Source of the DNA: Syncephalis fuscata S228
Lineage: Eukaryota; Fungi; Zoopagomycota
DNA length: 64,000 nucleotides
Assembly (NCBI GenBank): GCA_025786725.1
Contig: JAHLTZ010000020.1
Location: 1-64,000, forward strand
Direction: 5' to 3'
Part shown: in pieces, positions 60,391-60,600 of the stretch
Layout of the letters: each line of letters starts with the position of its first letter
Numbering within the stretch: the first letter of the stretch is position 1
The notes under the pieces: generated by a model
Database searches by the model: none
What the model saw: the letters and a program-made list of their open reading frames with translations, nothing else
What the model was told of the DNA's origin: nothing
Program-made: the position numbers and the translations under genes

Positions 60391-60509
60391 AACTACGTTC
60401 ATTGCGCCTAGAAAGCACCGGATCCCGTCCGATCTCCGAAGTTAAGTTAGGCCGCGCTTCTGTAGTACTGCGGTGGGGGACCACGCGGGAATGAGAAGTA
60501 ATGTAGTTT
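60391..60509 (+). rRNA. 5S rRNA
   Basis: 119 nt; helix I AACTACGTT/AATGTAGTT; conserved GATCCCGTCCGATCTCCGAAGTTAAG, TAGTACT, TGGGGGACC..GGGAA. Confidence 0.96.
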
Positions 60510-60515
60510 CAGTAT

Positions 60516-60586
60516 GCGTAGTTGGTTTAGTGGTATAATTACCGCCTGCCACGCGGTAGACCGGGGTTCGATTCCCCGACTACGCA
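60516..60586 (+). tRNA. tRNA-Gly(GCC)
   Basis: Acceptor GCGTAGT/ACTACGC, anticodon arm ACCGC-CTGCCAC-GCGGT, T-loop GGTTCGATTCC; 71 nt. Confidence 0.97.
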
Positions 60587-60590
60587 ATCC

Positions 60591-60600
60591 TTTTGCTTTT
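60591..60600 (+). terminator. Pol III oligo-dT terminator (TTTTGCTTTT)
   Basis: First T4 runs downstream of both 5S and tRNA. Confidence 0.7.

Follow-up and report, generated by a model that had tools for sequence, protein, structure and literature searches.

The 5S rRNA genes of Syncephalis fuscata each precede a tRNA gene and probably form 5S-first RNA polymerase III dicistrons

RNA polymerase III (Pol III) genes are, to our knowledge, textbook single-gene units, and the few natural dicistrons that we know of all lead with a tRNA-type promoter. A locus of the zoopagomycotan fungus Syncephalis fuscata S228 raises the question of whether a 5S rRNA gene can take that leading place, with a tRNA gene transcribed behind it. 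The locus occupies 60391-60600 of the window, by which we mean the whole stretch of DNA analysed (64,000 nucleotides, positions 1 to 64,000 of the forward strand of contig JAHLTZ010000020.1 in assembly GCA_025786725.1; contig C113 in our numbering), and is composed of the following features:

60391..60509, + strand: 5S rRNA gene (Rfam RF00001), 119 nt, ending in TTT and without a terminator of its own.
60510..60515, + strand: spacer CAGTAT, 6 nt, the same in all 7 Gly units of the genome.
60516..60586, + strand: tRNA-Gly(GCC) gene (RF00005 and ARAGORN), with A box TGGTTTAGTGG and B box GGTTCGATTCC intact.
60591..60600, + strand: putative shared terminator, made up of a T4 at 60591-60594, GC and a back-up T4 at 60597-60600 (TTTTGCTTTT).

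Both genes are full-length matches to their families. The 5S gene scored 106.2 bits against RF00001 (cut-off 38) over model positions 1-120, and its sequence shows no difference from that of 11 other genomic copies; the tRNA gene scored 65.7 bits against RF00005 (gathering score 29) and was assigned by ARAGORN to glycine with anticodon GCC. The last bases of the 5S gene, TTT, are 60507-60509, and no run of four or more T occurs in the window sequence from 5S +1 to the tRNA end; the T4 at 60591-60594 is the first after +1 and lies 4 nt past the discriminator base. The initial annotation had described a 5S gene ending in TTT, a 6-nt CAGTAT, a tRNA-Gly(GCC) and a first T4 past the tRNA, and the sequence, Rfam and ARAGORN show this description to be correct in every part. 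The CAGTAT spacer is predicted to be the 5' leader of the tRNA and would become the 3' trailer of the 5S rRNA once RNase P has cut. In the predicted fold of 60391-60595 (205 nt), the 5S three-way junction and the tRNA cloverleaf form separate domains with the spacer unpaired between them, a geometry that, as modelled, would suit RNase P.

The same layout was found at every 5S gene of the genome. In the assembled DNA, to which all counts refer (29.4 Mb in 371 contigs), Rfam identified 22 5S genes, and a BLAST search with the 5S sequence, in which all candidates were scored, gave the identical 22. The genome-wide count of 5S genes with a tRNA less than 20 nt downstream, which the initial annotation had proposed as a check, came to 22 of 22, ARAGORN placing a tRNA directly downstream and on the same strand in each case. 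The partner tRNAs are Gly-GCC (7 units), Asp-GTC (5), Ile-AAT (4), Glu-CTC (3) and Lys-CTT (3), and the spacer, specific for each tRNA type, is 6-7 nt long in all 22 units. The 5S genes end in TTT (15 copies), TTC (4) or TTA (3). A T4 or longer run ahead of the tRNA end is present in 0 of 22 units, and a run of T4-T7 starts 0-4 nt past the tRNA in 22 of 22, with TTTTTGC runs as a frequent back-up. Twelve of the 5S copies have one and the same sequence, and variation is confined to nucleotide 119 and C40T. The 22 copies comprise eight near-identical pairs (96-99.6% over 3 kb), which are haplotigs or recent duplications, and six singles, and thus about 14 loci. One 5S-tRNA-Gly copy (L022, G000:C142:7950-8142) has two single-base deletions in the 5S gene and one in the tRNA gene, its twin L016 being intact; it may be a decaying copy or pseudogene, or it may reflect assembly errors.

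BLAST searches with the individual tRNAs revealed that a 5S gene precedes every gene for Gly-GCC (7/7), Asp-GTC (5/5), Ile-AAT (4/4) and Glu-CTC (3/3), together with three of the four for Lys-CTT. The single free Lys(CTT) gene (G000:C279:227122-227194) is identical in sequence to the fused ones and has A+T-rich upstream DNA and a T4 of its own. For four essential tRNA species the genome offers no gene elsewhere, so the 5S-tRNA units must be expressed. The idea of a one-off or pseudogene copy was rejected on the strength of the 22 of 22 units, the 12 identical 5S sequences and the four tRNAs without free genes; a one-off silent copy, which the initial annotation had named as fatal to its proposal, is thereby excluded at the level of the family.

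The units also bear possible traces of exchange. Three loci (L005, L015 and L019, at G000:C2:8011, C328:362395 and C328:84600) are 94-97% identical over more than 1 kb of upstream DNA and the 5S gene. They carry different tRNAs (Ile, Asp and Lys, respectively), and their homology breaks at the 5S 3' end, so that recombination inside the invariant 5S gene appears to swap tRNA modules.

To place the layout in a wider context, we used a control set of 82 5S genes from public metagenomes, retrieved by a 21-nt core of the window 5S, of which 74 are complete. None of the 82 has a tRNA at 20 nt or less downstream, and all 74 complete genes have a T run of at least 4 within 10 nt of the 5S end, this run being the gene's last bases in 57. 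Set against these 0 of 82, the 22 of 22 units of the assembly go far beyond chance. With the terminator kept in 74 of 74 controls and no tRNA fused, terminator loss and fusion are lineage-specific here. A separate possibility, that the layout is a general trait of this 5S sequence type, was ruled out by the same metagenomic genes (0 of 82). A metagenome search with a pattern from the 5S 3' end returned no match. Related DNA was recovered from a soil-metagenome run (X2), in which a 297-nt contig of a relative spans a 5S gene running into tRNA-Gly; it shows 16 differences over 175 nt and three changes in the spacer, its 5S gene ends in TTG, and its T4 lies 5 nt past the tRNA. Because this relative keeps the order 5S to tRNA-Gly, the layout is conserved beyond the S. 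fuscata genome.

RNA evidence was obtained from a public run of 2017 (X1), which consists of assembled contigs rather than reads and is presumably poly(A)-enriched. One contig skips ten GT..AG introns of a minus-strand gene at 61033-63000, and the depth is 0 both in these introns and in the intergenic stretch 60670-60951, from which it follows that X1 is RNA without DNA background; contamination by genomic DNA was ruled out on this basis. Contig depth is 259 over the 5S body and 41 over the junction at 60509-60515, demonstrating that there is RNA which continues from the 5S 3' end through the spacer into tRNA-Gly. At other Gly units, contigs extend into the upstream flank by 16 nt and by 140 nt, and at the L009/L021 unit into the downstream flank by 255 nt. 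Since these RNAs are longer than a unit, the junction RNA is not assignable to Pol III, and part of it could derive from longer transcripts, possibly of Pol II. A contig with the window copy's own downstream flank is absent from X1, the intergenic stretch of depth 0 being that flank.

We consider it likely that the 5S and tRNA genes of each unit are co-transcribed by Pol III from 5S +1, that RNase P separates the two RNAs and that the 5S trailer is then trimmed; the polymerase, the start site and the processing steps we infer as follows. The 5S internal control region would recruit Pol III through TFIIIA, TFIIIC and TFIIIB, probably assisted in most copies by a block of conserved sequence at -55 to -1, and transcription would start at 5S +1. 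At a 5S end of TTT, TTC or TTA the polymerase would meet no terminator and would read through the spacer and the tRNA, stopping at the T4-T7 that lies 0-4 nt past the tRNA. The resulting precursor of roughly 200 nt would fold into a 5S domain and a cloverleaf, whereupon RNase P would cut at the tRNA 5' end and free the 5S rRNA with a 6-7-nt 3' trailer; a Rex1-type 3' exonuclease would trim this trailer, and the tRNA 3' end would arise by the usual trailer removal and CCA addition. The 5S-first Pol III dicistron put forward in the initial annotation is supported by the 0 of 22 units with an intervening terminator, the junction RNA contigs, the soil relative and the predicted fold.

Alternatively, each pair might consist of two abutting independent units, in which the 5S transcript ends at or near its own 3' end, non-canonically or by fast processing, and the tRNA is started separately by TFIIIC on its A and B boxes, with TFIIIB positioned over the 5S 3' part; we judge this improbable. 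Both tRNA boxes are canonical and an independent start inside the 5S 3' part is possible, but the fused tRNAs are without the A+T-rich, TATA-bearing upstream DNA of free tRNA genes. The free tRNA-Lys(CTT) gene of identical sequence makes stand-alone function possible, yet those tandem Pol III genes that have been studied in yeasts use only the upstream promoter in vivo (PMC2566860). As to termination, a non-canonical mode of Pol III is documented in human cells (PMC3141230), whereas in S. fuscata seven units end in TTC or TTA with two T left, and the retention of T4 or longer by 74 of 74 control 5S genes makes the loss here systematic. The junction-crossing RNA in the X1 contigs likewise argues against two units and for co-transcription.

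The comparison of upstream DNA was based on 21 free tRNA genes, which have 16 distinct flanks. This DNA is 70-88% A+T, and a TATA tetramer lies 50 to 31 nt ahead of the mature end in 9 of the 16; in the fused tRNAs the corresponding position is taken by G+C-rich, TATA-less 5S sequence. The difference lends mild support to a dependence of the fused tRNAs on the 5S start, and we see an even chance that they depend solely on the 5S promoter. Among the free genes (L183-L202), several unrelated ones, for Ala, Arg, Met, Thr and Trp tRNAs, have a common GGAATATATAT or ATATATA in this same interval of 50 to 31 nt before the mature end. Pol III genes of S. pombe require an upstream TATA, and the flanks of the free genes hint that a similar requirement may hold here. 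A further motif was seen on the other side of the units: about 30 nt past the tRNA-Gly terminator, all Gly units (among them L009, L013, L016 and L021) carry GGTCACGTGA(T/C)C, with the E-box palindrome CACGTG. The window copy has GGTTACGTGATC at this position (60614-60625), one base off, and CACGTG is also found upstream of free tRNA-Arg(TCT) genes (L192-L194).

Upstream of the 5S gene, most units, whatever their tRNA, have in common a block from -55 to -1 of the form TTTTACGTAAA ... AAATTACGAACGA ... TGCAAAAAACTGCC.TCACTTC (for example, L012 1446-1500). Its features, a TTACGTAA palindrome, a AAATTACGAA motif and GCAAAAAACTGCC, are missing in the window copy. A degenerate pattern of the block has 16 genomic matches, each of them near positions -35 to -10 relative to a 5S gene; the same pattern reversed, as a control, has 0. 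By its distribution the block appears to be a 5S-specific upstream element, which selection or gene conversion could maintain. Farther upstream, most loci have 0.7-1.4 kb in common at about 70% identity. This DNA is a dispersed non-coding repeat (about 70-87% identity, both orientations; L012 65-1137) that also occurs without a 5S gene, at 8-2528 of the window. Two loci, that of the window (also represented on another contig, C4) and L003/L004, are without the repeat in that position and have perfect genes. No Rfam match was found in the conserved upstream DNA of 13 loci, and no gene-like open reading frame in the upstream DNA of the two loci listed.

The initial annotation had also pointed to the presence of a TFIIIA gene as a matter to check, and a candidate with 9-10 fingers was found at G000:C317. 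At about 562000-563900 of the + strand (L176 506-2369), a zinc-finger model scan identified six open exon pieces with 9-10 C2H2 fingers, which were searched singly and not as a joined spliced model. The piece with fingers 4-5 matches Xenopus TFIIIA (1tf6, residues 107-160) with an E value of 3e-19, against 2e-12 for the next protein, and the following piece has yeast TFIIIA (8ffz) as its best match (E 2e-14); the piece with fingers 2-3 aligns with TFIIIA fingers 2-3, other zinc-finger proteins scoring above. Judged by these matches, the gene is very probably the TFIIIA of the organism. With a TFIIIA-like gene present, TFIIIA-independent expression is needless to explain the layout, and ordinary type 1 initiation is the simplest account. 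That the tRNA B box serves as a downstream promoter element of the 5S gene and relaxes its dependence on TFIIIA, as the initial annotation suggested, is speculation. A composite promoter, in which TFIIIC on the tRNA A and B boxes cooperates with TFIIIA on the 5S gene or partly replaces it, seems to us unlikely; if true, it would explain why the same tRNAs were recruited independently here and, in the opposite order, in Yarrowia, it would provide a general selective reason tying 5S to these tRNAs, and it would represent a natural hybrid of type 1 and type 2 promoters.

The upstream DNA also bears on whether the 5S rRNA and tRNA might be cut from longer transcripts begun in the repeat by a Pol II or other promoter, an origin that we regard as very improbable. 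The 0.7-1.4 kb of dispersed repeat precedes most units, but the window/C4 and L003/L004 loci have perfect genes without it. The RNA contigs that extend 16 and 140 nt upstream of other units would fit such transcripts, yet T-run terminators follow directly after every tRNA, the 5S internal promoter region is canonical and a TFIIIA candidate exists. A start by Pol III at 5S +1, which we prefer, is furthermore in line with a retrotransposon insertion at exactly that position in the window copy, where the following features were found:

55070..55073, + strand: left TTCA target-site duplication, beyond which the native 5S upstream DNA continues leftward.
55074..60387, - strand: intact Ty3/gypsy LTR retrotransposon, 5314 bp, recognised by Pfam domains, LTRs and target-site duplication.
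55074-55410 and 60051-60387, - strand: LTRs of 337 bp with TG..CA ends and 0 differences.
55441-59952, - strand: gag-pol open reading frame of 1503 aa (Pfam: gag, zinc knuckle, protease, RT, RNase H and integrase).
60388..60391, + strand: right TTCA target-site duplication, 4 bp, corresponding to 5S -3 to +1.

The best solved-structure match of the gag-pol product is Ty3 Gag-Pol (7q5b, E 1e-106); a search for this product in public assemblies gave no match. The element is expressed, the RNA contig that spans it having a depth of 1391. An empty site, ...AATATTTCAACTACG..., is present on contig C4 (27.8 kb), with TTCA at C4 7695-7698 (L023). C4 is collinear with 47442-55073 and 60388-62693 of the window at 97-99.6% identity (98.7% between 50557-55073 and C4 3180-7698) and is without the element; it is therefore the same region lacking the insertion, through either an insertion polymorphism or a recent duplication. 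The identical LTRs indicate that the insertion is very recent, so that the intact sequence of the 5S and tRNA genes says little about their activity. As read from the two contigs, the insertion has removed the native upstream DNA of the window copy, with the 5S and tRNA genes remaining sequence-perfect.

In S. cerevisiae, Ty3 integrates at Pol III transcription start sites (reviewed in PMC5911963). As with Ty3, the target duplication of this Ty3/gypsy element includes the base at which a Pol III gene begins; in contrast to Ty3, there is a single such insertion in this genome, and its duplication is 4 bp long. By analogy with Ty3, the landing of the element on the first transcribed 5S base would fit initiation by Pol III at 5S +1. 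Apart from this element, the family has just one LTR in the genome, a solo copy on contig C75, 90% identical and with the duplication ATAA, beside which no Pol III gene was recognised. For other gypsy families, 29 loci were examined with ARAGORN over the protein match and about 1.5 kb on each side, and none contained a tRNA. Of the two family insertions one (n=1) lies at a Pol III start site, 5S -3/+1, and targeting of such sites by the family is at most a possibility.

It is conceivable, although we think it rather unlikely, that the family consists of dicistrons and that the window copy among them has been silenced or weakened by the retrotransposon's removal of its native upstream DNA. The element sits at -3/+1 and the upstream block of most other copies is absent, but the empty C4 site is already without the canonical block, which means that the window/C4 locus never depended on it. 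No RNA contig has the window copy's own downstream flank, yet the internal control region is untouched, the 5S and tRNA genes are 100% identical to the consensus, and the LTR end supplies a TATA tetramer at -25 of the window 5S. The retrotransposon on 5S +1 and the empty allele together constitute a natural experiment on the effect of upstream DNA on a unit.

Pol III dicistrons are known in the form of tandem tRNA-tRNA genes (Ser-Met in S. pombe, Arg-Asp in S. cerevisiae) and plant tRNA-snoRNA genes. These resemble the S. fuscata units in that the upstream gene is without a terminator and that cuts by tRNA processing enzymes are proposed, whereas their upstream promoter is of type 2 (tRNA) and the one here is of type 1 (5S). 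Closer in gene content is Yarrowia lipolytica, where 48 of the 108 5S genes follow a tRNA gene at a distance of 4-7 nt and are transcribed together with it, from the tRNA promoter and independently of TFIIIA; the tRNAs concerned are Gly(GCC), Asp(GTC) and Glu(CTC), besides Gln(CTG) and Thr(AGT) in one fusion each and a Lys(CTT)-Glu(CTC)-5S gene that occurs once (PMC2566860). In Trichomonascus vanleenenianus, apparently all 5S genes are in tandem with tRNAs (PMC13130702). The units described here agree with those of Yarrowia in joining dispersed 5S genes to tRNAs by a few nucleotides (6-7 here, 4-7 in Yarrowia), on the same strand, less than 10 nt apart and with a single terminator after the downstream gene. 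Four of the five partners here, Gly(GCC), Asp(GTC), Glu(CTC) and Lys(CTT), recur in Yarrowia, a striking overlap for which a high demand for these tRNAs, or the strength of their promoters, may be the reason. Unlike in Yarrowia, where the tRNA comes first and RNase Z separates the RNAs, the 5S gene comes first here and RNase P would make the separating cut; and whereas 48 of 108 5S genes are involved there, the layout here is obligate, for every 5S gene as well as for entire families of tRNA. With the 5S gene upstream, transcription of the unit must depend on the 5S promoter, and a requirement for TFIIIA is to be expected in place of the bypass seen in Yarrowia.

Engineered 5S rRNA-tRNA(Gly/Leu)-sgRNA cassettes are transcribed and processed in several fungi (PMC8542335, PMC8542773), which shows that the 5S-first order is functional in principle. 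They have the same order as the units described here, together with Pol III read-through and cuts by RNase P and RNase Z, the tRNA being Gly in some constructs; they are artificial and carry a guide RNA, whereas the S. fuscata layout occurs in nature, is conserved and supplies RNAs that have no other source. We found no description of a natural 5S-first dicistron in the open-access full-text literature, in agreement with the initial annotation, which knew of no such layout in fungi. Pol III dicistrons of 5S and tRNA genes being already known, what is new here is the reversed order and its obligate character, which extends to every 5S gene and to four to five tRNA families.

For S. fuscata, the arrangement would mean that the whole 5S supply and four to five major tRNAs (Gly-GCC, Asp-GUC, Ile-AAU, Glu-CUC and most Lys-CUU) are physically coupled and, if the transcripts are shared, that ribosome and tRNA output are hard-wired together, with TFIIIA in effect acting as a tRNA transcription factor. 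The overlap of partners with Yarrowia hints at a common selective logic behind such fusions, and the units would provide a natural precedent for the 5S-tRNA-guide RNA cassettes of fungal genome editing.
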